From contig NW_003314331.1 in assembly GCF_000143415.4 (NCBI RefSeq), positions 1-64,000 of the forward strand: 64,000 nt of DNA. Reading direction: 5' to 3'. The DNA comes from Selaginella moellendorffii. Taxonomy: Eukaryota; Plantae; Lycopodiophyta. The stretch's first letter is position 1. Each line of letters begins with the position of its first letter. The position numbers and the translations under genes are program-made. Below are positions 4,890 to 34,035 of this stretch, piece after piece. The notes beneath the pieces are model-generated. The model saw only the letters and a list, made by a program, of their open reading frames with translations, made no database searches and had not been told where the DNA came from.

Positions 4890-5255
4890 ACTATGGTGCT
4901 CAAGGAATATGGCAGCACATGGATCTTCAGCGAGGAAGGATCACCCATGGCAATGCGATCCAATCCAATGTGGCAGCATGACCAGATCTTTGATGCCATG
5001 CCCAGCCGGAATCTCATCTCTTGGAGCACTCTCATGCTAGGATACCTGCAGAATGGGGAACCCAACCTCATGCTGGGACTGTTCAGCACTGCACCAATTT
5101 GCTGGATTGATTGACTATCCTCATAGCATTTATAGTCTGCTGGAATATGGCTGCCAATCGCTAATTTGAGAAAGAGCTGCTTGGAAAAAGGGGCAGAAAT
5201 CCATTACCTGGCTGGGAAGAATGGATTGGAAGAAGATATCTTCGTGGTGAACAAT
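4890..5255 (+). pseudogene. PLS-type PPR gene remnant
   Basis: QIFDAMPSRNLISWSTLMLGYLQNGEP and GAEIHYLAGKNGLEEDIFVVN, with stops and frameshifts. Confidence 0.6.
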
Positions 5256-7149
5256 CATTCAACTTCTATTTACATAATCTTTCACGTCAAAATATATAAT
5301 TACTTTTACAACAATTAGCAAGTACTTTTGAGTGGTCTTTCCAAATATGCTGAACATTTTACTTCTTAAAAATGTCTATATATTTCATAATATCAAACTA
5401 TAAATAAATAATTCTATGTACCACAGAATTATTCATTAATATGATATCATCAACATTAACTAATATAACAACTACCTCAATATCTTGTTGTACATATGTT
5501 TGTGAAATTTTTTATTCTAATTTTGTTTTAAAAAAATTTATCTTATCTTTATATGAATTGTGCACATTGTTATTATAAATTTTTTAAACAAGTTTATAGT
5601 ATTTAGAAAGCATACAAAAGTAATTTAATACCAGTATATTCAATAAATTGACTAAAATAAAACATCAAAATTATATTTTTGATAGTTTGAGAATATTGAT
5701 AATATGAAAAAAACAATTCTTGAAGACCTCTAAAAATATATTCGATTTTAGTACCTCTATAATAAGAATATTTTCTAAATCATTACGAGTTATAGATTAT
5801 TATGAGATTAGCAGTTTCTACAACATCCATCTTTAAAAATAATATAAATCGCTGCAGTAATTATGTTGCTTTTTTAAGGTTATTATGAAAATATATTTTA
5901 TATTTTACATAATACAATATCTTAATAATTGTATTGCATTGTATTTAATAAAACAAAATATTTCTTACACTTAGAAGGAAGCACTGGTTCTTGCAATAAA
6001 AAATAATTCATGTAGATAGATATTTATAAGAACTAGTTTGATAATTTTCATTTTTATCTTCTTTAAAATCTAGGTTTCAACAATCTCATCTATAATACCA
6101 GAGAATGATAAAGTACTGAAAAATAAAACTTAACTCACAAATGATAATCCTGATAAAACAAAATATATTTTTAAAATGGAAATACAAAATAAATAAACAT
6201 ATTTCTATTATATATTAAAAATGTATTGTATTAATATCAATATATTATCATATACAAAATATGTTATTATTATATGTACATAGTAATGTGCAAGATTTAT
6301 ATTTGAAACTAAAAGTTTAACATTTTTATATCTAAGTAAATTTATAATAATGAGCATTAAGTTAAAATTAAAACTATTTGAGAAAAATAATATTAATACC
6401 TATAATATTAAACATTGTTATTCTATTAATGATTTATTTTCTTAAATTATTAAATAATTATTACATTAATATCAAAATATTTATATATTAGTTCAAACAT
6501 AATAATTAGTTAATGTAAACTATAAATTTTTCCTTTCCAATTTGCTAGTTTACCTCGTTTATCCGACCACCATGGCCTTGACCTTAGTTAAGTTCCCTCG
6601 CCAAGGTTCCCACTTATTGTACTACATCTTACTTGGTCGTATTTAGTTTTAGCAACTAACTACATAAGCAACAGAGTGTTATCCATCCATCCACGAATTC
6701 CCAAATCTCTTCCAATCCCCCTCCCTAGGTTAGATTAGACTTAAAGTTCGGCTACACTCCCCACAGGCATAAGCAACTAAGCACACCAAACTTCCAAATT
6801 TTTAACATCCCTTAATACAACAAAATTTGATCATAAGACCCTCTAAATCCCAAGCCTTAAATGTAACATTTGCTTCAAGACACTAGGTGGAAACACCATA
6901 GCCTAACGGCCTAGTATAGATATTTTTACTCCCCCACTCCCATCCCAAAGGGAAGGCCCAAGCCTCTAGAAAAGGCAAAGATTAATGAGCCATAAGGTAC
7001 TTAAGTGGGGCACCACTCCACATGAACCGAGAGCACCACAGTTGGTTTCCTTTTCGAAAGTGGGAATTGCTCTTGAGCACTTCTTGAGATGGCTCCTCTG
7101 GCACCACCCAAGTCCATGCTCACTCTCACCCAAGGCCCTTCTACCCTAG

Positions 7150-7435
7150 TCTCAACCTCAAGTCAGTTTAGAAACACCACTGACTCGACTTGTATTAATA
7201 CTTGGACTCAGTCTCAGACTTGATCTCGAATTCAGTCTTGGACCCGACCTTGGACTCAGTCTCAGACTAGACCTTGGACTCGACCACGGGCTTGTTCTCA
7301 GACCCAATCTCATATCTCAGATCTCAGACTCTGTCTCGAACTCGGTCTCGGAGTCAGCCTCAGACTCAATCTCGAACTCTATCTTGAACTTGGTTTTAAA
7401 GTCGGTCTTGGACTCGATCTTAGACTTGGTCCCAT
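7150..7435 (-). repeat. Degenerate 6-bp-periodic repeat tract (GAGTCC/GAGACC-like on the minus strand) in TE-like DNA
   Basis: Repeated tcagtc/ttggac/tcgatc/tcagac units. Same type of tract as 31540-31775 and 33582-33745, in opposite orientation. Confidence 0.6.
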
Positions 7436-8165
7436 CTGATGAACTTTTTATCATTTCGGTTATGCTTTCAGGAATCCTTTGACCTATGACACATCGGGGA
7501 GTTGCTTCCTTACATTTAGTTAAAACATAGTAGTTATATTAGGATTGAGTAATTATATTAAGTTAGTAAGACTCATTAGGTCTCCTTTATTGAAATTTTT
7601 CCATGCTTACAACTAGTTATATGAAGAATATTTATGACTTATTTTATGTTCTACAATTATTTATAAACATTAATATTTAGAAGAATTTTACTTCATTTAT
7701 CTATATATTTATATTATGGGAAAAAATGAAAGTATGACATGTTGGTACTATAAGTGCAATGTGCTGGATGATGTGACTACAAAGAATTTACAAACCCTAA
7801 TTGTCTTCTAAGAAAGTGCTTAATCCTATCAAGGATTTATGGAATTGTATTATAAATTTCTTTCCTTTCATATGTATTCTTTTTAAAAGTTAAAAAACAT
7901 ACCTATTGCATTTAGTCTCTTGAAGTGTTATATATAATAATAATATTTTCTCCAAAACTTTTATCATTTTAAGGATCAAGAAATAAAGGAAAAATAAACT
8001 AAAAAAATACATTATTAAGGTAAAAAAAATTAATTACATCAAATCAACATGAGTATACAATTGTGTATAAAAATAATTGATAGGAATTTCATTATAATAT
8101 TTAGTGTCAGTAATGTATTACTCAGATTCTCTAACTAATTGTAAAAACATACTATGAAAATGTTT

Positions 8166-8265
8166 NNNNNNNNNNNNNNNNNNNNNNNNNNNNNNNNNNN
8201 NNNNNNNNNNNNNNNNNNNNNNNNNNNNNNNNNNNNNNNNNNNNNNNNNNNNNNNNNNNNNNNNN
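8166..8265. other. Assembly gap (100 N)
   Basis: Run of 100 n characters. Confidence 1.
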
Positions 8266-9919
8266 AACCAGATAATTGAGAATCTGAAGCAAGAAAGAAA
8301 CTATAATAGAGATTGCTACAGTTTTGAATGTAAAAATATCATTTTCTGAAAAAGAAATTTTTTTATGTTTAAAGAAATATTTGGTGATATATAAATCTAA
8401 AACATATAATACTTAAAGATATCTAAAATATAATATTATAATTAAGGATATACATAACTAAAAATAATTCCTTAGATTAATTTATATCTTTAAAATTAAA
8501 GTTTTCTACAATGTCAATCCTAGATTTTATGGTAGTCTCACATTTATATATTAATTTTATAATAGTATTTTAGAAATCAGTTGCTATAAATGTCTTATAA
8601 ATCTATAATCAATTTTATTATAATTAAAAAAGTATTTAAGTATAATTATATTTTTCTTGTATATGAAAATATGAGATATAATGTTTTAATTTTAATTGTT
8701 ATGTTCATTTAAAGCTGCATAAAATACAATTCATTATACAAGAAATTGAAAAAGTATGGATGATTAAAATTAATAATAACACTTTTATTACAAATGATAA
8801 GCTTAATACAGAAATGATTGTTTTTTAAAAAGGAAACACAAAATAAAATTATAATATTTTTTAAATATTATTATAGTATTAAAAGTATCATATAAAAACT
8901 ATTATAATCTTATAATACAAATAGTAAGTTTAAGTATGTAAGTTACTATTACCTATATACTCGGTAACTTTAATGTCGAAGATATTAACTATTTTAAAAT
9001 TAAAATTAAAATTAAAATATTTATTTTATTATATATTTATTTTAATATGAAACAATATTAAATATATTACTATATAAAAATATAATAATAATACTATTTA
9101 AGTAGTAATGTGCTTTAATATTTCTTATAGTTATAAAGTTTTGTATTTTATATAGTTATTAAAATTATATACTTTTTGTTTTATATACTTGCAAATGTTG
9201 TCTTTGCAATAGTGCCAATAATATTCATGTATCTCATTGTAAAAGAATCTTAATTCAAACTTGATAATTTTTAAAAAGCACATGGTACAGATTTATATCC
9301 TATCGTATTTAAAATTCTGACAAACCTATTTATTCTAGCACGTTATATTTGTTTATAATCATGTTCTTCTTTAGATAATTTATGTTTTTTATAATTTAAT
9401 TATTTTTTATTTTTTATTTTTTATTTTTTAGATTTTTAGCTATATATGATTTAGAATCCATTTTATAAAGACAATCTTATAAAAAATTGTTACAAGTTTC
9501 AAACTTTAATAAAGCTTTTGAGATCATAACTTCCATAAGATTTTATAATCATAACTACTAGCATGATATGACTAATTATAATAATGAACTGGAAGCATGT
9601 TGGTGATGGAGTGCTCCCTAAAAAGTCTCACAAGTCATGGAGCATAATAAGTGGCTTCAAATTTTGCAGTGGAATCATCTAGGAAGCAAATGACACAAGA
9701 GTGATGTCAGGCATTTGTGCTCTTAATTTCGTTAGTTACTTTAAGAGTGTGTTCTTGGTGATTGTTTTAGTCCCTTTGGGACATGGGGTAATGTATATAT
9801 ACATTTATCAAGCATAATCTTTGATTTCTATGGCCAATGGCTATAGGTGTTCAGAAAAAACTATAAGTTCGGAACAGGCAACGTAAAAAAGAGACAGACC
9901 ATTCTAGTATTGTTAGTCG

Positions 9920-11420
9920 CAGGTGTATTTTATGGATAACCAGATTTGGTAATTCTATCTCTGTCACAGACACGAACTTTAAGTATGCTGCGATCAAGAT
10001 TAGTTCTCAGTTTAAGAAAGTTCTTCCCAGCTGTTGAGACTTTACGCGAAAAATCTTATAGAGCACTAAGAAAGTCACGAGGAAAGAACTCGTTAAAATC
10101 TAAATAGATTTTGAAGGATCCAGAAAGGGCTTGATCTAATAACTTGCAGTGAAATATGACCATGGTAGGCTGTACCAGAGGTTAGAAAGAAAAATCAAAC
10201 AAACGAAGCTATAAGGAAGAAACTTACCTACCTGATTCTTTGCGCCACGCAAACGAGGAAAAAAATTAGCTCATTTGTTACGAGATACAAGATAACAGCT
10301 ACCAAAGCCAGTTCTCGTCAGTCCTGTTGCATGTTCGCTGGACGAAGCTGCCCGGAAGGATCAGGATCCCAAAAGCGAATACAGAGCCTGTGGCGTGTTG
10401 GTATCTGGTTATAAAACACATCAAAAGTCGGGGCACAGAAGACAAATCTTAAACACTGAACATAAACAACGTTTTATGAAGGCCAACCAGACAAGTTTTC
10501 ACCTGAAGCTAGAGGATAAAATAGCTATGCCGAAGCAATCGAGCTTCTATTAACAGCTTGGTTTTCGAGGTAAAAATCTTGCTAGCTGCAAGAAACACAA
10601 ACAGTAGGCCTTTGAAGATAATGAAGTATGAAACCACGCACCTTTGAATGTACTTCTTTGGCTGGTCCAAAAAAAAACAAATTCATCATCTTTTCGCATA
10701 GGACAGCCCAAGTTTTAGACCTGCACGTCGAGCTGTTAGAACTTCCAAGTGTCCATGTACAAACCAAAACTATTCGTTCAAATCATCATAATTTCGCCAA
10801 GAAGATGTCTTACTCTCTTTCTCCTGCAAATACGTCAAAGAGCAGTAGAAAAAACCAAAGCTCACATACTCGAGAATCACGTTGTAAATATGAGTCACGA
10901 CATTTCCGGAAAGCCTCGTCCTTGCTCCCATAGCGGCATCAAGCGGAAGGATGTTGTAGTGCTTAATGTCCTTCTTGGTCACATCAGAGTTCATAGCTTG
11001 CATCTGCACAAAAAGAAAACTATTTGCGAAAACTTAAACAACAAAAAGAAACAATACTTTACATCCGCTCCGTCTTGCCTTGTTACAGAGATGAGTACGT
11101 CAAACAAAATATAAACTGTCTGATAAGCTTTCGCACCTGTTAATCCAAATCACATCAAAACTTAATTGTATTTAAATTCATCCGATGATCGGCCTCCAAA
11201 GCCGTGCTCCTAATAGTTTTGGTAGAAGTGTTGCATCTCCCGCGTGGACACTTCTATACGATGGGATGTTGCAGGCTCTCTGTGCCGCAATAGAGAGCTC
11301 CTTTGACAGCCAGTTCCATGGTATGACTGCGCTCCAGATAGATCAAGGCATCGATCTTGGGCAACGTTCGGGTTGCTAACCGGATCAAAGACGCACAGGT
11401 TGACAGGCAACGATAACAAC
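9920..11420 (-). pseudogene. Callose synthase (GSL/CalS) pseudogene, heavily deleted
   Basis: Conserved CalS segments in correct order on the minus strand: STREMQHFYQNY*E, KKDIKHYNILPLDAA, SSWRNYDDLNE*FW, then a frameshifted GCPMRKDDEF (cf. GWPM..D.DF). Stops and frameshifts throughout; about 1.5 kb versus a normal CDS of roughly 6 kb. Confidence 0.75.
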
Positions 11421-12351: not shown

Positions 12352-14245
12352 CTACATCCAGCTCCGAATCTTATCACGACATAGCTCGGCTAGTGAGAAG
12401 TCCTCGGCAGCCGGCGGGAAAAGGCCATCCTTGCTGCGCTTCGTCTTTGTCTCCAGGCCAAGCCTGCGTGTGATTTCTTTGTGGATGTCCCACAGCACCG
12501 GTGGCTCGTACCCCTCCATCGTGGGAAGGACTACCCTGCTATGCCCGACATATTGTGTATAAGCTCGCCACATCGTTGTGTCTGGTGGCTAGCTACATCG
12601 TAATCTTCTGGCCGCATGTGCATAACCATCTCACCCTTGATTTCTTCCCTGCGTTTCAACACCAACACTTTATAAATGGAGTCTTTGAATCAGATATACT
12701 CTTTACCACATAATGTCCTGGGTTTGGGTCCTGAGCGTGTGCTCGATCACGGAAGGGGTGCGCTCCTTGCAGAAGGCATCCAGCAAAACCTTGCAAGAAA
12801 AGCATGGCAATCAGCTCACCAACAAGTTCGTAACACAATCCGATATACCTCCTCCTCCTCCTCCTCTGCAGCATCTAGCGTACCGAGCCGGCCATCTAAA
12901 CAAGCTCCAATATGTCAAGAAAGAGAAAAGAAAGCTCGATCGAGGCACAGGAACTTACACGTCAAGTTGTGGTCGTAATAGATCCGGAGGTCGTGACGCG
13001 CGAGCCAGATGCGAGCGTGCTGCTTGCAGTTCCAGATGGCGTGGTGGTGTGGCAGCACGGACAGCGGTGGCCTCTCGGTGACGAGCGATCGCAGCAGCTT
13101 GTTGTTCTCGATCCCCTGGAGCAGCAGGACGAGCTCCTTGACCCGCAGAGGTGCGGAGTCCATCTCGTATGGAAACACACGCATGGGAGGTGGGTCAAGC
13201 GGATGTCGTGTAAGCTGCGAGTAAGCCCGTCTTACTCCATCTCGGTTGCTGCTATGTTTGCACGACAGCATGTTCCACCCCTTTCGAGAGCAAACTGTCG
13301 AATGAATGGTAAGCTGATCACGTATGCAAGTACCAGCCTCTCCACTGGGAGCGTTAGAAAAAAGTCGGCTTTAAGAATCTTGGATACCAAGCCAAAGAGC
13401 TTCGGGACAGCTGCCACCCCATACAAACGGGAACTCTCTTTGCTCTCCGTGTTTGTCAGCTTGTCTCCTTGGCAAAGCCATCTGAATTCCCCATTAGAAG
13501 GCTTGCGGTAGGGTGGTGAAGCCCAATAGTCCATAGCGATAGTGTTGCGTGCTGGCATCTCGGAGGTCACTGGGACAAGAGAAACGAAGAAAAAGAGTTG
13601 CTGTGACACGAACAGCACTTGAAATAAACCTCGGATGTTCCTCTCGTTGCAAAACTTGGCCCACAGAATCTCCAGGTGCTCGCTCACTTCCTCGTCTTGC
13701 TTCGATGAGTCCGACGAGCCAAGGCTTCGAAGTCCAGCGGATCCAGTTGAGAGCAGCTCCTGGCGAGAAAAGTCTACCATGCAATCCAGCTGCTCACGAG
13801 CGCCATCCCAGCCCAGCGTCGCAGCACACGCGCTCCTCTCCGCACCGGAGAGGCGAGCAATGTAGCAGACGGCCAGCACCAGGAACAACGTCTCGTCCGT
13901 CTCGGGGGAATCCCAGTATTGGAGCAAGTATTCCATGGACGCAGCTTCGTGCATGTCTAGTGCCGCTGCCTCCTCCTCGTGCGGGTGGGCAGCCATTGAG
14001 ACAAACTTGGACACTGTACGGAGCTTTGCAGCGCTCTTACACTGAGTGAGAGCCCGATGCAAGAGCCCTTCTTCTTGTTCCTGGCGCTTGGGAAGATGGA
14101 TGGGAGCAGCGATTGTAGCCCAAGGGATAGGGCCATTTGGCATCATAAGAGGGCATACTGGGCGGACACCTAGCTGGCTGGCCAGCCGGACGTTCCGTCT
14201 TAGAGCGCCACTCATCCTTGTTAACAAAACCGTAATTTGAAGCAT
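12352..14245 (-). CDS. Multi-exon gene of unknown function (possibly lineage-specific family, possibly disabled); paralog of 20190-21570
   Basis: ORFs 13232-14245, 12915-13271 and 12352-12573 each align by eye with the + strand copy near 20.2-21.5 kb (shared VKELVLLLQGIENNKLLRSLV, DETLFL.LAVCYIA, QLDCMVDF). Exon structure is not fully resolved. Confidence 0.5.
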
Positions 14246-15194
14246 ATTCTTTTTGTCGCAACTTAAATTAATAATTTACTGTCTTTTTCAATATTCAAGT
14301 ATGATCATCATAAGTTATTTTTTAATATTAACATAATCTAAAAGTATTTGGAGGCATCAAAATAAAAATTATAAGTGGTGAGGTCCAAATGTACATATAT
14401 TAATATTAATGTAGTGGGAATTTAATAGCCATTGGATTGATTCCAATTTAGACCATTTGCTCCTATATATAAGCTAGAGTTTTTAGGGTAATTGATATAC
14501 ATATTTTTATATTCCTTTTCCATATTCTATACACTTACAAAGTGATTTAATGAGAGACCAATTAAAATCACTACTTAATCTCCAACTTGTTGACAATCAA
14601 AATGACAAAAGAGTAAATTATAATACTAAAGTTATTTCTTATCATGTGAAGCCTTGAGTTTTAGCTTAACCAATCTTTGTCTTATGATGTGTGGCTCCTT
14701 GATTGATATTGCCTTTTTAAATATTATAGGTAATTAGAATTTAAGAATGTTTTAAATTATATATAAAAATATAAATTAATATGTTTTAAAAAATTATTTT
14801 TAAACTCAAATATTTTAAATTACTTTAATATTATAACAATATAAACTATTTTCTATCACTAGATTAGTGTTGTGTATGTAAAATAATATTTTGAATATAA
14901 ATATGGTAAATAATTCAGGAGCTTACACTTGGTCATTATAGGTTGAAAAATGTGTAATACATAAGAGAAAAAAACCTTTCATGAACACAAATATAGTTTT
15001 GTCATCATATGACTAAAATGGTTAACGAATATGAATATGAACATGATTTTGTCATCATTTGAGTAAAGTGGTTAACAAGTTTAGGCAATTGGTTGAGGGT
15101 AGTTAAGCGTACTCAAGCTTAACATGCTAAAGTAGATGGAATTTTTTACTATAATAGCCATATATATTTATCATAGGTGGATGTATTGCTTTAT

Positions 15195-15695
15195 CAAAAT
15201 TTATTTCACTATTATGATCATCCTAAGCTTAATCATTTAAGCTGGAAGAAAACATATAAACTGATTAAGTACAATTTTTATTAAAGGAATATAAAGGATA
15301 GTATCCTCAAGTATTGTAAATCATATGAGCTCTGTCAATAGGTAAAGGTCCCATGGGAAAAGCTAAGGGGACTTTTGTAACTAATGTAATATCTTTATAA
15401 ACTTCATCATTTATTTGCTATGAACGTTGAGGCAAAAGGAATAAGTATTAGTTATAGTAAATCAATTGACAAAGTATATGTGTTGTTGGCTCTTTGGAAA
15501 ACTGTCACTACCTTAAACTTAGATGCAGTATATAAAAAGTCTTTCCCTATTTTGGTTTGCCAAAAGACATTGTCAATGATCAAAACTTAAAGTTCATTAA
15601 TGGATTTTAGAAAAACTTTGTGAAAGTTATATAAATAACTTTGAAACTCTCAAATGGAGATCATCCTCAAATGAATGGGCAGACCAAAAGAAAAC
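15195..15695 (+). mobile_element. Degenerate Ty3/gypsy integrase remnant
   Basis: YDHPKLNHLSWKKTYKLIKYNF..KYCKSYELCQ*VK resembles the HHCC zinc-binding domain. GDHPQMNGQTKR resembles the core YHPQTDGQTER. AT-rich and decayed. Confidence 0.55.
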
Positions 15696-15865
15696 TCTCA
15701 CTTAATAAGAGAAAAAAAAACTCTCACTTAGATATCACATATCCTAATCACAAGAGAAAGAAAACTCTCACTTAAAAATGTGCACAAGAGAAAGAAAACT
15801 CTTACTTACATCATGTGTCCTAGTGTGAGAAAAAAAAACTCACTTAGATATCATATATTTTAGTG
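15690..15865. repeat. Degenerate ~35-45-bp tandem repeat, about 5 copies
   Basis: Recurrent aagagaaa(g)aaaactctcactta core. Confidence 0.7.
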
Positions 15866-17189
15866 TATGACGTTAAGGCTTGAGTGTTGTGCTAAGTCAT
15901 TATATATTGAATCCTAAATACAACCTTCTAGATTGAGATTTGCTAGGAGGGTGTTGGATGTAGAGAGAGAAAGATTGCTTTTAATTTTTATTCCATATTT
16001 TTTCCATGCTTACTAAAACCTTTTTATGTAGGTGAATATAGATAATATAGAACATTGTTATGCAATTCAGAAGCTAAATAGGCCTTTCTATTGACTAAAG
16101 ATTTAATATAATATTATTCAGTATGCATTTGATGCTAAAACCTGTACTCACCCTTAGGTTAGAGTTAATTATAATTTCCCGTTTGTTTGAGTTTATAGTG
16201 TGATTTAATGGGGTTTTTTCCACAATTAACTAATGGAAATGAATATTATATTCAACTATTTAACTTGTTGGTTAGAAATTGGTGCTTTTGTTAGGGCATC
16301 TACAATTATTTTTACATATTTACTCCTTAATTGAGTGGTATTTCAATATTCTTGTCTGAAATAAATTCTCTTAAATGATTATTATAGTTGAGGTATTATT
16401 TTGATGTAGCCATTGGATTGGTTTCAATACAAACTATTTGCTGTTGTATATATTCCTATTATATATATTAAATAATAAATAAATATATTTTTATTTAAAA
16501 TTTCTAGAAAAACATAGTTTATGGATCTTCTTAAATATGTAATATTGTTCATAATTTTATCCAATTTTCTTACAAAAACACCTTATTTACTTTGAATATA
16601 AGAAAATTTTTCACATGAATATTGGCAATACTATGACAAATTTACTTAGCATGTTTATAATTTAAATGAATATATCGGTAAAATATATTAAAATATCCAA
16701 AAAATTACCATAGACCAAACTATAATAAGATCCCTATATTCTGTTTAATCAGAAAACCAAATAAAAGAACATCTTTGAACCACTCTAAATCTTATTCCTC
16801 AATTCATCCCAGGATTTAATACAGTGCATAAAAGAAAAGGAAAACTCTAGCTTTATACATATGCTACTCAGCCACGTGTCCCAGTGTATGTCTGTGGAGC
16901 TGCAAAGCTGCTATGTGCCAGATTTTCAGTTCAGAGGGCAGATTAAAAGCCGAGAAACCGAGGAGAGAAATCTACGCCCAGGTTCATGTCTGGCGCCTTC
17001 AGTGAGTGAGCCTCCACAATTTACTAACTATTCATTCCATGCAGCTGAAGCAAATGTTGATGACCAAGGTGCGGGGTCCATGTTCGCATGCAGCAGAGGA
17101 ATGGACGCAAGAGCTTGACCAGGGCCTGAAGAAAGAATTTTCTTTTCCTCTTTCCTTTTTGAGTCCTCACTTTGTTTTACTCTTTCAAC

Positions 17190-17725: not shown

Positions 17726-19113
17726 TTGTGAAAGTGCCCCGTCGCCCACGACTTGTTGGAGCCGGGTGATCAGCGTGCTAGTAACTACATCATCCCAAGA
17801 AGAAGAAAGGCGCCACGCCTCGCTTCATCGGCAACCTGGTGAAGCGGTCCAAGAGGCATACATGGACGAGCAAGAGGAGGCTGGCGATGGAAGTGGATGC
17901 CGTTCCTGAGACAAGTTTTAAAGTTACATTTCTTTCAAAAACCCGAACGTTTACTTGCCTGCATGAGATCATTTGCCATCCAAGCGATTTCAAAGGCCCA
18001 ATCACACTTTCGTCTTGGAGGACCCGACAAAGGTTTCTTAGCAGCAGACTCCGCGACGGCCTAGGAAGGAGTAAATGGAGTTAATCCGAATTATCTTCTA
18101 CTCGTACATTACTCGGTAGAGTCCCTCTCTGTAACACCTGCTTGATCGGCTCGTTAAATTCGCTGTTTCGTTCGAGTCTTGACACCAGCAACTCTGTCAA
18201 GATCCCGTGCTTTTGAGATGAATATTATGAAAAGTTTTCTCTCCTTGGGAGTCACGTGGTAAACCCTTGGAGAGGTGGTAATAAAACTACCGATAAAGTA
18301 GATGGCAAAGAACTTAAGTCACCGTATTCAAAGTCAAGCCAAGTGGATTACCTCCCTGTTACACTCTAATGTATAAAGAGAGAACCAAAAAAAACCGAGA
18401 AACTGCAGCTCTTTATCAACCTGACAGTCAAACATGTGAAAAGGAAAACAACATAGTAACGAAAAAACGAAGAAAAACAAAGAAAACGAAAGGAGCAAAA
18501 TTCCTGAGTTCTCCTACAAGCCTTTCAAGTTTCCGCAGCAGCACACGTATGCTCTCGTTCAATCCTTCCGCTGCATTGGCTCCAGTACCCATGGAAAAAT
18601 CGCTAACTCGACTTCTCGCCCTCGCCCAATCAATCCAGCCCCGCGCCTCTTCTCGCAATCCTGAAAATGTGACGAAGCGACAGAGAAGCTAATCCGCCCC
18701 GCCGAGCAATAGTGCCAGTGATAGAAGTAAGTTCCTTGCTGGCAAGCGATCAGGAAAACTCAATCACTTTGCCTGCATGTAGATGACACTTATTTCTCGC
18801 TTCCTATCCATCTAGACGTGGACAAGAGCTATGGAGGAAGATCGGCTGTGCCCCTTTTCTAGAAGGAAGCTGATTATTGACAACGATGAGCTTTTGGTTG
18901 AGTGGGCGAAAGGTGGCGAGGAGACATCTTCAAGGAACAAGACAACGGAGTCGAATATCTATTGCGAATGGTGTTCTTCACATGAAAAGGAGATCAAATT
19001 TAACGAAAACTACAATGTTTGAACCAAGAGCACTGAGGTTGGAAGACTCATATAGTTTTCTGAAGCTCAACATCACAAAAAAGACGGCTTTAGAGAAATA
19101 CAGGAGCAGTAGC

Positions 19114-19941
19114 CTAGACTCTGAATCCTCGGCTGTTACGTCGCCCGCGAGCCTTCTCAAACTTGCGCCCCTTGGAGCGCACGTACGGCTTGGTGTGGCT
19201 GTGTGGCACACCAGGAGCCGGCCCAAAGTGCTTCACGGCCTCCCGAGCGGACTTGCGACCCCTCAAAAGTACCTTGGCAAAGCAACAAGAAAACTAAGAA
19301 ACAGGGAGGGACTTTACGACTGATCGCTGCTTACCGTGTTGCATCCAGTGGGTGCCAGGAGCGCGAGCTCGTCAAAGGTGAGGCATTTCCCTCCGGCGTT
19401 GGTGATCCTGGCGCGGGCAGTCCGGGTGAAGCGCAGAGCCACCACTGTCATTGCGGGAACCGCCGCGAGTCTAGGATCGTCGGTGACCGTTCCAACGAGG
19501 ACAGCGATCTTTCCCGACTGTGTCAGAAGGAAAAAAGAAAAACCAATCAAGAAGTGATGCGAGCAATCGGAAACCTCACCTTCTTTTCCATGCTAGCGGA
19601 GAGGCGGGAGAGGGACACTGGCGGCTGGTTGGTTTTGCTCATGAAGAGCCGCTTGAGGATCACAGCGTTGAATTTGCTGTTGGTCCTTCTGACCAAGAAC
19701 CGGTAGAGCTGCGAGAGAGGAAATGGAAAAGAAAATGCGTGAGAAATCGCGCAACCGCTCTAGATCCAATGCCAAATCCCACGCACTCACCTTGACGAGC
19801 AGCTTGAGGTAGACATTGTCACTCTTGGGGGCTGTCCGCTTGGTCTTCTTGTTGCGCCCGCCGGCTTCGATGTCGATACCCTGCAGCAAAGCGAGCGCCG
19901 TGAGACGAGGCCATCCATCGCAGCAGGGATCCACCTACCAT
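19114..19941 (-). CDS. RPL18: 60S ribosomal protein L18 (eL18), 187 aa, 5 exons
   Basis: Exons 19939-19941, 19791-19880, 19580-19708, 19335-19517 and 19114-19272 with GT-AG introns. [36 protein letters not shown]...[16 protein letters not shown]. Confidence 0.97.
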
Positions 19942-20189: not shown

Positions 20190-21570
20190 CCAAGAAGGAG
20201 ACTTGCATCAAGCACAATGCAGAGAGAGCGCTGCAAAGCTCCTCACGGTGTCCGAGTTTGTTGCAAAGTCTAGGCCCCGGCACTGGAGCTCGGTGCATGG
20301 AATACATGGGACTCCGCCGAGGTGGACGAGACGCTGTTCCTGGAGCTCGCAGTTTGCTACATTGCTTGCCTCTGCGCCTCAAGTGCCGAGAGGAGTGCAA
20401 CGCAGCTGGATTGTATGGTTGATTTCGCCTGCCAGAAGCTGCTCTCGTCGGTTGGAATCCATAGACTTTCGTCGCTGGACGCAGCTAAGCAAGATGAGAG
20501 CGAGCACTTGGAGCTACTTTGGGCAAAGTTTTGCGAAAACAAGGTTTGTGTTTGTCTCATGTTCTTTCCTTTCTTTTTCACGTTTCCTTGGTTCGAATGG
20601 CCGAAAAACCAGCACGCAACGAAACCGATATGGATCTCCCGTACCAAAGATCCGCTCCACTCCCGTACCGGATGCCTTCGAACCGGAAATTCAGATGAAA
20701 TAAACCATCTGTTGCTTCAGTTCTCTCATCAAATAATGTTTGCAGGGTGCTGCCAAGGCAAAAAGATGACGAGTAAACCAGGCACAAGGAATACACAAAT
20801 ACCATCTGGTTATGGTGCACTCGAGCCACCGTGAAATGCCCTCTATGTCTCTGCTGGTCAAGGAACTCGTCCTGCTGCTCCAAGGGATCGAGAACAACAA
20901 GTTGCTGCGATCACTCGTCATGGAGACGCCACCCCTGTCCGTGCTGCCGCACCACCAACGCCTTGCATCTGGCTTGGACGCTACGACCTCCGAATCTATC
21001 ACAACCACAACTTAACGTGTAAGTTGTTGCCTCTCAAGAGTTTATCTTTTTAAAAGCTTGTGTTCGGTACACAGGATGCTCCAAAGCAGGAGGAGAAAAA
21101 GGATAGTTTTTTTCTTTTATATGATCAGAAGTGTGAGCTTATATCTTCGTGTTTGCACCACACAGGTGTTGCGGGATGGCTTTCACAAGGAGCGCACCCC
21201 CATCTCTGATCGAACAGACCTGCGACGTGACACTCATGACAGCTTCTGGTACATGATCCGATTCTAAAGCTACTTGACTTACTTCGTGCGTCGTTTTCAT
21301 CTCCTTTTCGTAAGCGTCCACGATTGCGATCCCAAAGGCCGCCTTGGCGTGCCTCTAGGAAGTATGTTGGGCATTGCAGGGAAGTTCCAACACCCCGTGA
21401 GTCTGTGCTCAACGATGTCCATAGAACATTCACAAAGACTCTCGGGTTGGAGAAGAAGTCGAGACCCACCAGGGATGGCAGTTCTGTAGGTAGAAGCTCG
21501 AGAGTTGGATGTAGAAAAGAAAGATTGGTCCAAAATTGAGCTTAATTTACGGGACATTTATGGACTGTTA
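20190..21570 (+). pseudogene. Frameshifted paralog of the unknown gene at 12352-14245
   Basis: Homologous blocks are split across frames (ORFs 19816, 20322, 20812, 21058, 21324), with internal deletions and stops. Confidence 0.65.
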
Positions 21571-21762
21571 TTGACTATGTTCATTTGGCATTGACTCTGC
21601 CAGACTAGCTTTCGACGACGTTCTTTTGAGGCGAGCTCGTCTGCTCGTACGGCCGTGGTACAGGATAATCAGATCTTGGAGAAAGACTAGGGCATTCGCG
21701 AAGCCTCGGACTTCTTGGAGAGAGGAAGGAGATTCTTGTAAGCTCTTAGATAGAACTCATTC

Positions 21763-22680
21763 TTATTTCCATCTCTTGGATTCCCACGTCTCGGCCAATG
21801 CCACTGCTTGCTCGAGCGTCTGGGGATTGTGATCATCCACGCCCATCCGGACGCTACACTTGAGGCCGTGCACGTAGTACGCCACCTTGTCCTCATCGCT
21901 CAATCCGGGCAGCCGCGACACGAGCTTGCAAAACCGTGAGCTATACTCCCTCACCGACTTGAGCTGCCGGAGATCCATGAGCGCGAACTTGGCCTCGCGC
22001 TGGTAATTCGCGGGCATGAAGAACTTGAGGAACGCGTCCCGGAAATCCTCCCAGCTGCCCACCATGGCGGAGCTGGAGCTGGAGTTCTTCCACCAGAAGT
22101 AGGCCGCGTCCTTGAGATGGTAAGTCGCGATCAGCACTTTCTCGTCCGGGGTAGCCTGGCCGATTCGAAAGTAGCTCTCCACCTTGTGGAGCCACTCCCA
22201 GATCGTCTCGGCGTCGCGCTCGCCGCGGTAGATCGGGATCCTTGGCGGCTGGTGGTGCTCCTGATGGATGCGCGAATCGAAGGAGCCATTGGAGCTTTGA
22301 TCCGAGGGGCTGCTGCCGCCCTTCTCCTGGTCGTGGAAGCTGTAGCTCTCGATGGTCTCCTCTTGCAAATCTGGGTATGGAGGAGGAGGAGGTGGAGAAG
22401 GAGCCACATTGGATTCTCTGTGCTTGGCCATGGTGTCGAGATTGGAGACGAACACCTTGGTGGTGTGCTCAAAGAGATTGGAGCTAGAAGTACCTCGCGG
22501 GATTGGAGAGAGCGACGAGGATGGCTGCTTGCTCCTCGCGGTGGCACCGGCGGCGACCTTGAGGCTCAGCACCTCCGCCGAGAGCCGCGCCAGGAACACA
22601 TTGAGCTCCGCCATGACGCCCTCGAGCGATTCCAGCCGCCGCTCCAGCTCCTCCTGCCGATCCTCGCTGGTGGGTTTCAT
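21763..22680 (-). CDS. Stand-alone Ty3/gypsy gag-derived protein (305 aa): N-terminal coiled coil, Pro/Ser linker, capsid domain
   Basis: First ATG at 22680. Capsid-type motifs PRIPIYRGERDAETIWEWLHKVESYF, KVLIATYHLKDAAYFWW, SWEDFRDAFLKFF, LRQLKSVREYSSRF (major homology region), YYVHGLK and PQTLEQAVALAE, then a stop. No CCHC knuckle, protease, RT or LTR seen nearby. Confidence 0.85.
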   Translation of the reverse strand: MKPTSEDRQEELERRLESLEGVMAELNVFLARLSAEVLSLKVAAGATARSKQPSSSLSPIPRGTSSSNLFEHTTKVFVSNLDTMAKHRESNVAPSPPPPPPYPDLQEETIESYSFHDQEKGGSSPSDQSSNGSFDSRIHQEHHQPPRIPIYRGERDAETIWEWLHKVESYFRIGQATPDEKVLIATYHLKDAAYFWWKNSSSSSAMVGSWEDFRDAFLKFFMPANYQREAKFALMDLRQLKSVREYSSRFCKLVSRLPGLSDEDKVAYYVHGLKCSVRMGVDDHNPQTLEQAVALAETWESKRWK

Positions 22681-22869
22681 CACGGGATCCACCCAAGCTG
22701 CGCGGATCGAGACGATTCGGAGATGAGCGATGATGATCCACGCACAAAAGCCCCAAATGTGCTATTTGAAAATGGATAGTACTGTCGGTGCGGTGATGGC
22801 GATGAATCGCCAGCCCGCCAGCGCGATCTGATTCAAATACTTTCCCCATAATCACCGCGCTATGTATTC

Positions 22870-22935
22870 CAACGCGCGGTACAGCGCGGTAACTGCAGCC
22901 GTACCGCACGGTACCGCGCGGTACAGTGCGGTAGC
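22870..22935. repeat. GC-rich palindromic/direct-repeat cluster with four GTAC cores
   Basis: 19-bp direct repeat cgcgcggtacag(c/t)gcggta at 22873-22891 and 22915-22933. Perfect palindrome gtaccgcgcggtac at 22911-22924. Confidence 0.7.
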
Positions 22936-23868
22936 ACGCGCTAACTTAACTTCCAGGTTTGGTCGGCCAATCCACATCAGTCGCCAGATCTCTGCACGTT
23001 GCTGGTTTGATTTTTGTTTCCTCGATCAGTACACACGTGATTGCTGCTGCTAGATCACTCGATCACCACTGCATCACTGGAAAAAAAAAACAAAGAAAGA
23101 AACGATAAAACAGAGTAAAGCCACATTTGTTTTGCTTGTGTTCTTGTCTGGATCACAGAGCACAAACAAAAAGCTCTCAGACGCAAGCAAAGCGCGAGAC
23201 TTCTCTCTCTTTCGCGATCGATCTCGCTTTCCAAAACTCTCCTTTCCCAAACTCTAGCCAAAAATTCCGCGGGAGAGACAGGCATTGAAGACACGACATG
23301 AACAGTCATGGGATCCATCAACCGTAGCGTCATACGTATGCTCTACCCAGGAGAGTCTTGATCCATCCAATTCTATAATAGAAGTTCCAAGCTAAGAGTC
23401 CGAGAATGAGAGGGAAAAGATAAAAGCGCTGGTGTAGATAGATGTGATTGAAGCGTTTTGGAAAGGAATCCTCATTGTTTGTGAGTGCGCTCGCATGAGA
23501 GTTACTCGTCTTGTTGCTTTGTGTGGAATAGTATGTATGGTCGCAATACAAAGCTTCTTCCACGGGCTCTCAAAGTCAAGCCTCCAGACTCGATCAAGAT
23601 CGCTCTAAACGCGGAGTTGATCGAATCGTTTTACAGTTCCTCTTCTTCTTTTTAAGGTCCTTGATTCCCATCCCAATCGTTGTCACTCCTTCCTCCTGCA
23701 CGATCCGATCGATCCTTAGCTGGAGAGCATTCTCCAGAGGAAGTCTCTTTTCTCCTTCCAAACTCCCCAATATCTGCAGGAAAAACCGTCCTTTTGATCG
23801 ACGAGATCCTCCCTCTTCGTCTCTAGCTCGCGGTGATTCGAACGAGCGAGAGAAAGGAGCAAGAGGAA

Positions 23869-26056
23869 ATGGAGAAGATCGCGGCCCTGGTGCTAGCGAC
23901 TGCGGTGGTGATAGCCTGGATCGCCCCGGCCGCGCGAGGCGAGGTGAGGAGCTTCCAGTGGAAGGTGGAGTACATCTACTGGGCTCCGGATTGCGTGGAG
24001 ACGGTGGTGATCGGGATCAATGGGCAGTACCCGGGGCCGACGATCCGCGCCACCGCGGGCGACACCATCCGCGTGGAGCTGGAGAATGGAATGAGCACCG
24101 AGGGCCTCGCCATCCACTGGCATGGAATTCGCCAGGTTAGAGCAAAGAGTTTCCTCTCGATTGGATCATCGATTTCCAGAGAGAAGAGAGCGGTCCTCTA
24201 AAGATGATGATGATGATGATCTCGCAGATTGGAACTCCCTTCTACGATGGCGTCCCATTCGCATCCCAATGCCCGATCAATCCCGGCGAGACATTCACAT
24301 ACGAGTTCGTGGTGGACAGAGTGAGTGAGTGATTGATTGAGCTCGAAGATCAAGCACTGATTTTTCTATCCATTTTTTCCTCTGATCGCTGGCAGCCAGG
24401 AACTTACTTCTATCACGGGCACTATGGCTTGCAGCGCTCGGCCGGGCTGTACGGATCGCTCATCGTCGACCCCGTGCCGAGCGACGCCGTACCATTCACT
24501 TACGATGGCGAGCTCAGCATCGTCCTCAACGACTGGTGGCACCGATCGATCTACAGCCAGGAGACGGGCCTGTCGCAGCTGGGCAGCGCGTTTCGATTCG
24601 TGGGCGAGCCCCAGGTAAGAAGAAAACGCAAACGTCGCGATCGCGACAGGGGGATGGATCGTTTATCAGTCGATTGATCTCTCGATCGATGCGAAAAGTT
24701 TCGAGCTAAAACGAATCACACTGTTTTGCTGGCGCAGTCGCTGCTGATCGAGGGTCGCGGTCGCTACAACTGCTCATTGATTCCCGCGGCGCCGTCGTCT
24801 CCACCCCTGTCGGGCGATGTAATGTCGTGTAACAGCTCCCGGCCGCAGTGCGCGATGCATGCCCTCGCCGTACGGCCGGGTCTGACGTACCGACTGCGCA
24901 TCGCCAGCGTCGCCTCATTGTCATCGCTCAACTTTCTCCTCGAGGTACGGTACCCCATCTTCCATAGCCCCGTACTCTCATCCGTACACACCTTTCGCCA
25001 TTTCGTCTCAACTCCCTTTTCGTACACTTTGCCGTACTCTCTCTCTCTGTGGATTGAGCTTGACATGGATGAATTTTTGTGCTGCGCGATCAGGGTCACA
25101 ACATGACGCTGGTGGAAGCCGACGGCCACTACGTTACACCCGTGGAGATCTCCAACCTCGACATCTACTCGGGCGAGACATACTCGGTGCTCGTCACCGC
25201 CAACCAAGATCCATCGCGCAGCTACTGGGCGGCGGTGAATGTGCGCGGGAGGAGGCCGGCCACTCCTACAGGCCTCGCAATCCTGAGCTATGGCGATGGA
25301 AGCTCGAGCTCGGCGCCACCGAGCACTCCCGCGCCGCAGAGCCCCGCCTGGGACGACTTCGCCTACAGCGTTGCCCAGGCCAGGCGGGTGGTCTCGCGGC
25401 CGGGCTTCCAGATCCCTCTCCCGGAGCGAGCAAACGTTAGACTGATGCTCCTCTCGACCCAGAACCGGATCGATGGCAAGATCAAGTGGGCGATCAACAA
25501 CGTCTCCTACGTCCCGCGCGCCACGCCCGTGATCGCGGCCTTCCAGTTCAACCTCACCACCGCCTACGATCTCGCCGCCTCCCCGCCCCGCGATTTCTCC
25601 AGGGGCTACAAGATCCGGAACGCGCCCCCGAATCCCAGCGCCATCCAGGGCAGCGGCGTCTACACCTTCCGCCACAACGACGTGGTGGACGTGGTGCTCC
25701 AAAACTCCAACACGCTCGTCCCAAACAACAGCGAGATCCATCCCTGGCACTTGCACGGCCACGATTTCTGGGTTCTTGGGTATGGCAGCGGGATCTACCG
25801 TTCGCACCGCCACGGCAGCACGCTCAACTTCGTCAACCCGCCAATGCGCAACACGGTCGCGGTGTTCCCGTACGGGTGGACGTACCTCCGTTTCCGCGCG
25901 GACAACCCCGGGGTGTGGGCGTTCCATTGCCACATTGAATCACATTTCCATATGGGAATGGGGGTCATGTTTGCCGAGGGCGTTGACCGCCTCCCTCGAA
26001 TCCCGGCACAAGCTCTGGGCTGTGGCTACACCAAGGCGCTCTTCACAGCGCCCTAA
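23869..26056 (+). CDS. AO: L-ascorbate oxidase (multicopper oxidase), 5 exons
   Basis: Exons 23869-24135, 24228-24320, 24396-24614, 24738-24944 and 25094-26056. Signal peptide present. Cu ligands [18 protein letters not shown] and [12 protein letters not shown]; AO-type WAPDC and [12 protein letters not shown]. Confidence 0.95.
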
Positions 26057-26890
26057 TTCGAAGTTTAGATTCTGCCAACTTGGTTTCTATGCCAAAATGA
26101 AGTGCTTAGTAAATTGATTGAACTGGTCCAGGGAGGAGGAGTCTGTGGTGCTGCTAGATGAGGACCTTTCATCTCTGCTGTAACTACTTGCTTCAATGTG
26201 GATATACTACCAACCTAATTCACTTCTAATATGATTTCTTTAATGCATCCCAAGATACATGCTTCCTGAAATCTATTTTACTAGTGAGACTTCCAGTTAT
26301 GAGATATTCCAAAATAGACGCTCAACTGGAGGCATGAGCCCACGTTTCAGTTGAACTTTTGCAGTTAGCCTTCAATATGCAATATATTGTAAGTAAATTT
26401 TAGATTTATTGTAATTAATATATAATATAAAGTCTTAGGAATTTATTTTATTTAAAAAAAATTATAATTTTTATAAAACATTTCTAAACTCAAAATTTTT
26501 ATAATATATTTTTTTAAAATAATATTAATTTTTTATTGAAAAACTAATAATTTGCTGCATGAATTATATTGAGATTTATTTAGGATAATATGTCTCATTA
26601 TAAGAACAAAGAGTTGTAAGGATTTAAAATATAATAAACACTAGGATCAATGTGTGTAAGATTATTAATAGCCACTTTTCCACATCTTGATACAACTTTT
26701 AAGCACTGAGCAATTCTAGGTCACTATATATATCTGGCAATAACAGCATATTCCATATCAATTTCTCTGCTTTGAGCAACTATATTTAACAAAACTATCA
26801 ATTATGTTCTCTTAACATGTTTTAAATCACTGTCATAGATCTCCCAAACTTGATGAATCTAGCTGATGTTACTATAGGTGATATAACGAG

Positions 26891-27074
26891 CAAGAACAAT
26901 CGCAAGCTCAATCGCTCCTATCCAAAAACAAAGTTTTTAGCAGCTACAAAGCAAGAAAATAAACAGCAAGAACAATTGTGAGCTCAATCACTCCTATCCA
27001 AGAACAAAGTTTTAGCAACTACAAAGGAAATAAAAGAACGACCAAGAACAATCGCGAGCTCAATCGCTCCTATC
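26891..27074. repeat. About 76-bp tandem repeat, ~2.4 copies
   Basis: caagaacaat(c/t)g(c/t)(a/g)agctcaatc(g/a)ctcctatc starts near 26891, 26967 and 27042. Confidence 0.85.
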
Positions 27075-31539: not shown

Positions 31540-32115
31540 TTGAGTCCAAAATAAAGTTCGAAATGAAGTTTAAGATGGAATGCATAAAGGAGTCTAACAT
31601 GGAATTTGAAATGGAGTCCAAAAAAGAGTCCAATATGGAATTCAAAATGAAGTTTAAAATGGAGCTTAAAGTCGAGTCTAAAATGGAGATTGAGACCAGG
31701 TCCAAAATTGAGAACAAAACCAAGATTGAAACTAAGACTGAAACCAAATTTAAATCCAAGTTTGAGTCTAAGGGTGAAAGCCTAAAGCTATTGTCTCCCA
31801 AACCCTAAGGGGTTTGGGGAGCTCCAAAAGGATAATAAAGAGAGGACTTTAATAAAATTAGTTTTGCGAGGAAAAGTTAGTGTGACCAAGGATATTTATA
31901 TAGTGGATGATGATATAACTATTGAGGAGTCTAAAGTTAAAGTGAACATAGATGAATAAATAGAGCAACTTAATGAAGTGTTCAAGAATTAACTCTAGCT
32001 TCCTTGGGAGATCAATGCTCGATACTCCCAATTTAAATATGGGGTAGCACTACCTACTTGGATAGCTAGTGTGGTTTAATGGAACCTTACTCCAACCACA
32101 TGGCTAGAGCACCAA
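31540..32115 (+). repeat. Diverged interspersed repeat, copy A
   Basis: A 6-bp-periodic tract followed by agggtgaaagcc.aaa..attgtctcccaaac and gaagtgttcaaga.ttaact, also present at 33582-34035. Confidence 0.7.
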
Positions 32116-33581: not shown

Positions 33582-34035
33582 TGAGACCGAGTCCGAAATC
33601 AAGTCTGAGATGGAGGCTAAAGCCAAGCCCAAGATGGAGGTTGAGACAAAGATTGAAATGGAGTTCAAATTTGAGTTTGAGATTGAGTTCAAGTTCGAGT
33701 TCGAGATTGAGACTGAGTCTAAGTCCAAGTCCAAGTCTGAGGGTGAAAGCCCAAAACAATTGTCTCCCAAACTTTAGGGGGTTTAATAAATCCCTACAGG
33801 ATAAAAGGGGTGGAAGACTTCAGTGGAACTAGTAAGGCTAGTGTGACTATCAAAACTAAAGTGAATATAAATGGATAAGTAGGGTGATTTAGTGAAGTGT
33901 TCAAGAGTTAACTTGAGCTCCCCCGAGAGATCAAATAGTAAATATTCCCAATCCAAATATAAATGGCACTATTTATTTGGATACCTTGTGTGGTTTATCA
34001 AAACTTCACTCTAACCATATGGGTGGGGCACTCTA
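33582..34035 (+). repeat. Diverged interspersed repeat, copy B
   Basis: Direct-orientation homolog of 31540-32115. Confidence 0.7.

Follow-up and report, generated by a model that had tools for sequence, protein, structure and literature searches.

A solo gag gene of Selaginella moellendorffii, a lycophyte, is a plausible though unproven candidate for a plant-adopted capsid gene. The gene lies on the minus strand, close to 22 kb (Table 1), of a window of 64,000 nucleotides (contig NW_003314331.1, positions 1 to 64,000 of the forward strand, assembly GCF_000143415.4), and its open reading frame (ORF) is an allele of the annotated S. moellendorffii gene LOC112348553, which encodes the protein XP_024537088.1. 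In the reading favoured here, to which we give about an even chance, the locus is an old, immobilised remnant of a Ty3/gypsy element, consisting of the Gag N-terminus and capsid, that is retained as a single-exon, single-locus gene, probably under purifying selection, and is a candidate co-opted gag. This reading is preferred because the hallmarks of a retrotransposon are gone, the composition of the ORF is that of host exons, the conserved residues of the capsid are kept and the divergence between the two alleles is low.

The most serious alternative, which we consider distinctly less probable, is a neutral relic. In this case the other parts of the gypsy element were deleted, and the remaining piece of gag is still open by recency or luck and is not used by the plant; the RefSeq model would reflect no more than the presence of an ORF. 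The evidence bearing on this alternative is given with each set of results.

Structure of the predicted protein

The predicted Gag protein has a mass of 34.8 kDa and is mildly acidic, with a pI of 6.1. An alternative GTG start at 22692, reported by the ORF finder, would give a form of 309 residues, four codons longer. When the ORF is shuffled by mononucleotides 20,000 times, the frame stays open only once, and the ORF is therefore not a product of chance. The same GC-rich sequence also has long spurious ORFs in other frames, for example one of 220 residues on the plus strand, which favours a neutral fragment.

Two Pfam families are recognised with scores above their curated cut-offs, Retrotrans_gag (PF03732) at residues 184-274 with an E-value of 2.8e-18, and Ty3_capsid (PF19259) at residues 150-297 with an E-value of 8e-14. 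Faint matches to SCAN and to the CLZ leucine-zipper family (E 0.063) are also seen. The AlphaFold2 model, for which the input alignment held 146 sequences, has a mean predicted local distance difference test score (pLDDT) of 82. Its best-defined part is the capsid domain at residues 151-304, in which nine helices form two lobes with a pLDDT above 95. The long helix at the N-terminal end comprises about 4.5 heptads with Leu, Val or Met at the a and d positions, as in a leucine zipper; the heptad segment, RQEELERRLESLEGVMAELNVFLARLSAEVLSLK, corresponds to residues 8-41. The ORF, Pfam and AlphaFold2 agree with the original prediction of an intact 305-residue ORF with a coiled coil, a Pro/Ser linker and a complete gypsy capsid. 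The prediction that the ORF stops right after the capsid is borne out as well, the stop codon being one residue past the last modelled capsid helix.

Comparison of the model with the Arc and Ty3 capsids, which had been proposed as a check, gives the expected fold. In a Foldseek search of the PDB the best matches are subunits of the assembled dArc2 capsid, with a template modelling (TM) score of 0.76 and a root mean square deviation of 3.1 Å over 162 aligned columns. They are followed by dArc1 (TM 0.71) and the Ty3 capsid (TM 0.70), while PNMA2, the C-terminal lobe of PEG10 and HIV CA are found further down. In the BFVD viral library, a metavirus ORF1 ranks first. With sequence only, the protein matches dArc2 with an E-value of 0.0012. 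The protein is a member of the Ty3/gypsy Gag family, with a two-lobed, all-helical capsid homologous to Ty3 CA.

Relatives and conserved capsid residues

Relatives were sought by an exhaustive HMMER search of 1.84 billion protein representatives and by a word-index search of 5.8 billion clusters. HMMER gives 6198 matches with E-values of 0.001 or lower, and only XP_024537088.1 (303 residues, 99% identical, annotated as an "uncharacterized protein") falls below 1e-30. The match ranked next has an E-value of 1.4e-21 at about 31-37% identity; in the best matches, coverage is mainly of residues 145-302. The named matches comprise gypsy Gag or CCHC proteins of plants and one Lolium polyprotein. In the word-index search the partner allele alone is found.

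The protein thus resembles the Gags of plant Ty3/gypsy elements, such as those of Stephania, Cuscuta and Lolium (about 31-37% identity), in its homologous capsid, with matches to PF03732 and PF19259, and in the presence of the near-invariant residues of the family. In the capsid, each of the 10 columns conserved to 90% or more is kept, and so are 20 of the 21 conserved to 80% or more; the relatives, which were chosen by their similarity to this protein, do equally well. Retention of these residues argues against a neutral fragment. Unlike the plant Gags, the Selaginella protein has no CCHC motif, pol, long terminal repeat (LTR) or primer binding site (PBS), and its N-terminal 140 residues have no relatives. 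A CCHC knuckle is present in 102 of 144 relatives and absent here. The tail that follows the capsid has a median length of about 94 residues in the relatives and is one residue long in the Selaginella protein; since only 6 of the 144 have a tail of five residues or fewer, truncation after the capsid is unusual for the family.

Absence of the other retrotransposon parts

An intact, autonomous Ty3/gypsy element has a CCHC nucleocapsid, a protease-reverse transcriptase-RNase H-integrase polyprotein, and LTRs with a PBS and a polypurine tract; the locus does not have this set. The zinc-knuckle pattern CX2CX4HX4C and the protease pattern D[ST]G[AS] are absent from all minus-strand frames from 21800 down to 19000, about 2.8 kb, and the downstream ORF pieces match no Pfam family, save for one at 19.6-19.9 kb with an unrelated fragment of ribosomal protein L18. 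In a tblastn search for decayed pol or nucleocapsid with 149 relatives, which include polyproteins of up to 1658 residues, only 21778-22230 is matched in the 64-kb window, and no other gag or pol is found there. Similarly, blastn of 20-25 kb against the window shows a single copy of gag. These motif scans, Pfam searches and tblastn searches uphold the claim that no knuckle, protease or pol lies downstream.

The claim that LTRs are lacking also stands. No LTR or terminal inverted repeat was seen around the ORF when repeats, direct and inverted, were sought at several sensitivities, by an exact-seed search over 12-34 kb, by blastn with 20-25 kb as the query and all of the window as the subject, and by a search for short repeats within 3 kb. 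The two flanks were further compared with word-7 blastn and by Smith-Waterman alignment against shuffles. The best local alignment between them scores 30, compared with 23.9 +/- 2.6 in shuffles, which is background level and gives no LTR signal. A PBS string of the tRNA-Met type is not found upstream of gag with the few patterns tried. The surroundings are unrecognisable as an element, yet the N-terminus and capsid are intact and the stop is placed one residue past the fold, a combination that speaks against a neutral fragment.

Base composition

The ORF has a GC content of 0.60, with values of 0.57, 0.44 and 0.80 at the first, second and third codon positions (GC1, GC2 and GC3), and a ratio of observed to expected CpG of 0.91. 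Of the window's six host exons, five show a GC3 of 0.67-0.87 and a CpG ratio of about 1.0-1.1, while the sixth, MIF4G, has values of 0.49 and 0.77. In the flanks of gag the GC content falls to 0.48, so that GC steps up at the borders of the ORF. The AT-rich blocks of the window have a GC content of 0.27-0.32 and a CpG ratio of 0.35-0.45. High-copy repeats are described as methylated in S. moellendorffii (PMC2442089). The gag ORF is without the CpG decay that is expected of a long-methylated repeat, and its undepleted CpG and host-like GC3, unlike the AT-rich blocks, argue against a neutral fragment.

The original description of the ORF as GC- and CpG-rich like the host genes is therefore accurate, with GC3 and CpG ratio within the host-exon ranges of 0.49-0.87 and 0.77-1.09. 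The same description contrasted the ORF with an AT-decayed gypsy relic at about 15.2 kb. That block is indeed AT-rich and CpG-poor, but its gypsy identity is not borne out: it has no sizeable ORFs and shows no gag or pol similarity in tblastn with the 149 relatives at E-values up to 5. The contrast is therefore one of composition only.

Blocks of very low GC at 5000-10000, 14000-17000 and 26000-27000 (down to 0.16 at 8-9 kb) alternate with GC-rich genes along the window. The gag gene sits between host genes in a gene-dense neighbourhood that looks unmethylated.

The two haplotypes

XP_024537088.1 is encoded on a scaffold of 1,905,289 bp, and the same scaffold holds the partners of two other genes of the window, a pentatricopeptide repeat (PPR) gene at 48.2-50.0 kb and a helicase-like gene at 61.9-62.5 kb. 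The window's own scaffold is 997,799 bp long. Since the partner PPR and helicase-like genes are on the same scaffold, the 99% identical copy is a haplotype partner in a common neighbourhood and not a dispersed repeat. Since only this syntenic partner is close in sequence, gag is not a repeated family in the annotated proteins. The position of the gene is fixed, with the same neighbourhood on both haplotype scaffolds, and the hallmarks of transposition are lost, as is looked for in a co-opted gene.

These results bear on a second alternative, that the ORF belongs to a non-autonomous, gag-only mobile element like the TR-GAG LTR retrotransposons, or is a gag captured by a transposon, and is multi-copy and mobilised in trans. 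Gag-only non-autonomous LTR elements have been reported from plants, and the locus has the same gag-only coding capacity. Unlike TR-GAG elements, it has no terminal direct or inverted repeats at any sensitivity tried and no PBS-like site with the few patterns tried, and it is not multi-copy in the annotated proteins. Host-derived DNA and genes are met within 0.55-1.2 kb on each side, and no protein but the syntenic allele is near-identical. A mobile element of this kind is accordingly improbable.

Constraint between alleles

Both alleles of gag are intact. They differ at 2 of 303 residues (T159V and T177S, 0.66%) and by an in-frame indel of two prolines in a CCT repeat. The residue differences require at least 3 nucleotide changes in 712 nonsynonymous sites, a rate of 0.0042. 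The PPR gene differs at 11 of 615 residues, with at least 11 changes in 1411 nonsynonymous sites (a rate of at least 0.0078), and the helicase-like gene at 3 of 198 residues, with at least 3 changes in 457 such sites (at least 0.0066). The protein difference between alleles is thus 0.66% for gag and 1.5-1.8% for the two neighbouring host genes.

The two haplotypes of the S. moellendorffii assembly are described as about 98.5% identical, with a synonymous divergence (Ks) of 0.056-0.12 for collinear genes (PMC7801247 citing Banks 2011). With a neutral divergence of 1.5%, taken from this description, 10.7 nonsynonymous changes are expected in gag and 3 are seen (Poisson P = 0.006). These numbers imply a ratio of nonsynonymous to synonymous divergence (dN/dS) of about 0.28 or less, an indirect estimate that uses the published haplotype divergence as the neutral rate, not gag's own synonymous divergence. 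A neutral fragment should have accumulated about 11 or more nonsynonymous changes, and the 3 seen count against it.

Several points weigh against retention as a gene. Besides the indirectness of the constraint estimate, the difference between gag and its two neighbours, taken alone, lacks significance (Fisher P = 0.26). The N-terminal 140 residues are without relatives in both the HMMER and word-index searches. Apart from the allele, neither an orthologue nor a paralogue is found in any species among the predicted proteins searched, the coverage of other Selaginella species in these collections not being known. Syntenic orthologues elsewhere, by which Wang & Han 2021 recognise co-option, are likewise not found among these predicted proteins, so that the conservation across species usually required of a co-opted gene is not seen. 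RefSeq models gag only on the partner scaffold, and the protein collection does not contain the exact protein of the window. The literature yielded no paper naming LOC112348553. Finally, the mechanism proposed below is drawn by analogy.

The same lack of orthologues or of a conserved family among the proteins searched, the lack of literature on the gene and the annotation of only one of two alleles are what a neutral fragment would show. Among the thousands of gypsy fragments of a genome, a few gag-only pieces will also be intact, and the present locus was chosen for its looks. Should it be a neutral fragment, the locus joins the many "uncharacterized proteins" of plant annotations that consist of gag only. 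The original prediction of a domesticated capsid gene is therefore supported in part: the anatomy, the host-like composition and the single syntenic partner fit it, while an orthologue among the proteins of other species does not appear.

Proposed mechanism

If gag is a retained gene, as we favour, its protein would be made by the plant and may self-associate through capsid-capsid contacts and the N-terminal zipper, as the predicted structure suggests. The protein has neither a zinc knuckle nor a basic tail, and the canonical nucleocapsid route of RNA packaging would therefore be missing. Gag or capsid proteins that are truncated or stand alone, and that disturb the particles of related elements, include Ty1 p22, Fv1 and enJS56A1. 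By analogy, the Selaginella protein could act as a Gag decoy that co-assembles with, and poisons, the capsids of related gypsy elements. With no nucleocapsid or basic region and a pI of 6.1, such a decoy is judged the most likely mechanism and is ranked above an Arc-style, RNA-carrying particle released from cells, the less likely alternative.

The latter possibility, that the gene is like Arc or PEG10 and its protein builds RNA-enclosing capsids that leave the cell, deserves consideration on account of the structure. The order of domains is that of mammalian Arc, with a helical N-terminus, a linker and a two-lobed capsid but no nucleocapsid; the structural search places assembled capsids of dArc and Ty3 at the top; and the match to dArc2 is detectable in the sequence. 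In addition, the linker contains the heptapeptide PPPYPDL, in which a PPxY and a YPxL motif overlap. These are the two classical retroviral late-domain motifs, used for recruitment of ESCRT, the endosomal sorting complex required for transport, and their position in the protein, between the N-terminal domain and the capsid, is that of retroviral late domains. The heptapeptide is present in both alleles. Among the relatives, PPxY occurs in 2 of 126 and YPxL in none of 126, and the two motifs occur together in 0.03% of linker shuffles.

On the other side, the protein has no basic or zinc-knuckle region for RNA binding, its assembly, RNA binding and secretion would all be deduced from a predicted subunit fold, and it is not conserved beyond the species among the proteins searched. 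The linker motifs were noticed after the fact and lie inside a proline run, so that the pair may be a chance occurrence. Plants are not known to have NEDD4-type WW-domain ligases, the usual partners of PPxY, which also counts against release of this kind. An Arc-like or PEG10-like function is therefore unlikely. Even more doubtful is an Arc-like system of the lycophyte's own, in which the zipper would take the place of the nucleocapsid and particles would be released through binding of PPPY/YPDL to ALIX and ESCRT. If true, this system would be a plant parallel to the intercellular transfer by Arc and PEG10 in animals.

Relationship to known co-opted capsids

Co-option of retrotransposon capsids is well studied in animals, where Arc, PNMA and PEG10/RTL are examples. 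The similarity to Arc and dArc is in the two-lobed fold of the capsid and, for mammalian Arc, in the helical N-terminal region, the flexible linker and the capsid without a zinc knuckle. Unlike the Arc genes, the Selaginella gene comes from a plant gypsy lineage and has an independent origin. Arc is matched only at an E-value of 1e-3 in sequence and with 14-22% identity in structural alignments, which gives no sign of descent from the gypsy lineage that founded Arc. Capsid assembly and RNA transfer are features of the Arc systems, while the Selaginella protein is known from its predicted fold. Since its nearest kin are plant gypsy Gags, the likeness to Arc is architectural, not ancestral, and is convergence at most. 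The "Arc-like architecture" of the original prediction therefore holds for the layout of domains and fails for kinship. The coiled coil is also not a trait specific to Arc; in a heptad scan with a crude score over 144 gypsy relatives, 25 score at least 0.6 and 5 reach the 0.70 of the Selaginella protein.

The known plant cases are only four, all in angiosperms and all inferred by phylogenomics. These are the co-opted gag genes Crtg8-11, two of which, Crtg8 and Crtg11, are derived from Ty3/gypsy (Wang & Han 2021, PMC8321522). They are defined by syntenic orthologues above the family level, purifying selection and expression (PMC8321522). The Selaginella gene resembles Crtg8 and Crtg11 in being a stand-alone gene derived from a gypsy gag in a plant, and differs in having no counterpart outside one species among the proteins searched; its sequence kinship to them is no closer than to gag in general. 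PMC8321522 includes no Selaginella or lycophyte case, and none was found in other literature. The earlier suggestion of a plant counterpart to the animal genes is thus apt as regards a stand-alone plant gag gene, but such a gene would not be a first.

The restriction factors p22 of yeast Ty1, Fv1 of mouse and enJS56A1 of sheep resemble the Selaginella protein as Gag or capsid proteins without enzymatic parts. They belong to other retroelement lineages, and restriction by the Selaginella protein would be an analogy with them. Restriction of Ty1 has been reviewed (PMC13709905).

If co-option of the Selaginella gene is real, it would add a lycophyte case and show that capsid co-option recurs across vascular plants. 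It would also provide a small, single-exon and tractable protein for testing capsid assembly, retrotransposon restraint or carriage of cargo in plants.

Genomic setting

Table 1. Features of the gag locus, its predicted protein and its flanks (positions in the window)
Feature	Coordinates	Strand	Basis or remarks
Solo gag ORF	21763..22680	-	ATG at 22680, TAA at 21765-21763; 305 codons + TAA
N-terminal long helix, aa 5-47	22540..22668	-	AlphaFold2, pLDDT ~90
Second predicted helix, aa 67-90	22411..22482	-	AlphaFold2, pLDDT ~72-74
Pro/Ser-rich disordered linker, aa 91-150	22231..22410	-	pLDDT 43-63 and sequence
PPPYPDL, aa 99-105	22366..22386	-	Translation; overlapping PPxY and YPxL inside the disordered linker
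Capsid N-terminal lobe, aa 151-221, four helices	22018..22230	-	Pfam, AlphaFold2, Foldseek
Capsid C-terminal lobe, aa 226-304, five helices	21769..22005	-	Pfam, AlphaFold2, Foldseek
5' flank, ~1.2 kb	22681..23868	.	Common to gag and the + strand multicopper-oxidase gene, head-to-head
Self-complementary 10-bp tandem repeat GCGCGGTACA x 5.8	22874..22933	.	200-250 bp upstream of the gag ATG
3' flank without detectable coding or retrotransposon feature	21220..21762	.	Motif, Pfam, blastn

The DNA that could have come from the retroelement is short. Below 21219, 545 bp past the gag stop, the sequence is collinear with an inverted paralogous host segment, 20225-21219 matching 14037-12737. With host DNA at 545 bp on the 3' side and the oxidase gene at about 1.2 kb on the 5' side, the retroelement-derived DNA is therefore about 2.6 kb or less. 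The paralogous segment at 10.0-14.3 kb was considered as an "empty site", and this was rejected; collinearity ends at 21219/12737 and is not resumed beyond gag. On the 5' side of gag, the GC content remains at 0.51-0.59 for some 300 bp before the ATG.

For the PPR and helicase-like neighbours, gene models exist on both scaffolds; for gag, the equally intact allele of the window is without one. The GCGCGGTACA repeat sits in the stretch common to gag and the divergent multicopper-oxidase gene. This gene, which is ascorbate-oxidase-like, has an inverted, partial second copy about 5.6 kb away (18705-18758 and 24375-24429; 23833-26056), and the order of the duplicated oxidase pieces is incompatible with one simple inverted duplication.

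The inverted paralogous pair, 12737-14245 and 20225-21219, is GC-rich and 66-79% identical, and carries a pair of genes. In the first member this is an ATG ORF of 337 residues at 13232-14245 on the minus strand, which matches no Pfam family; its counterpart is on the plus strand at about 20.3-20.8 kb. The L18 fragment belongs to an ORF at 19596-19934 on the minus strand. Residues 19-50 of this ORF correspond to the initial 32 positions of ribosomal protein L18 (PF17135), with an E-value of 1.8e-5 and a score that falls short of the curated cut-off; the ORF is either a solitary first exon or a fragment. Farther away, in AT-rich DNA, an array with a period of 12 bp and units like GAGTCCAAAATG occupies 31542-31721, with a diverged copy about 2 kb off at 33589-33672.

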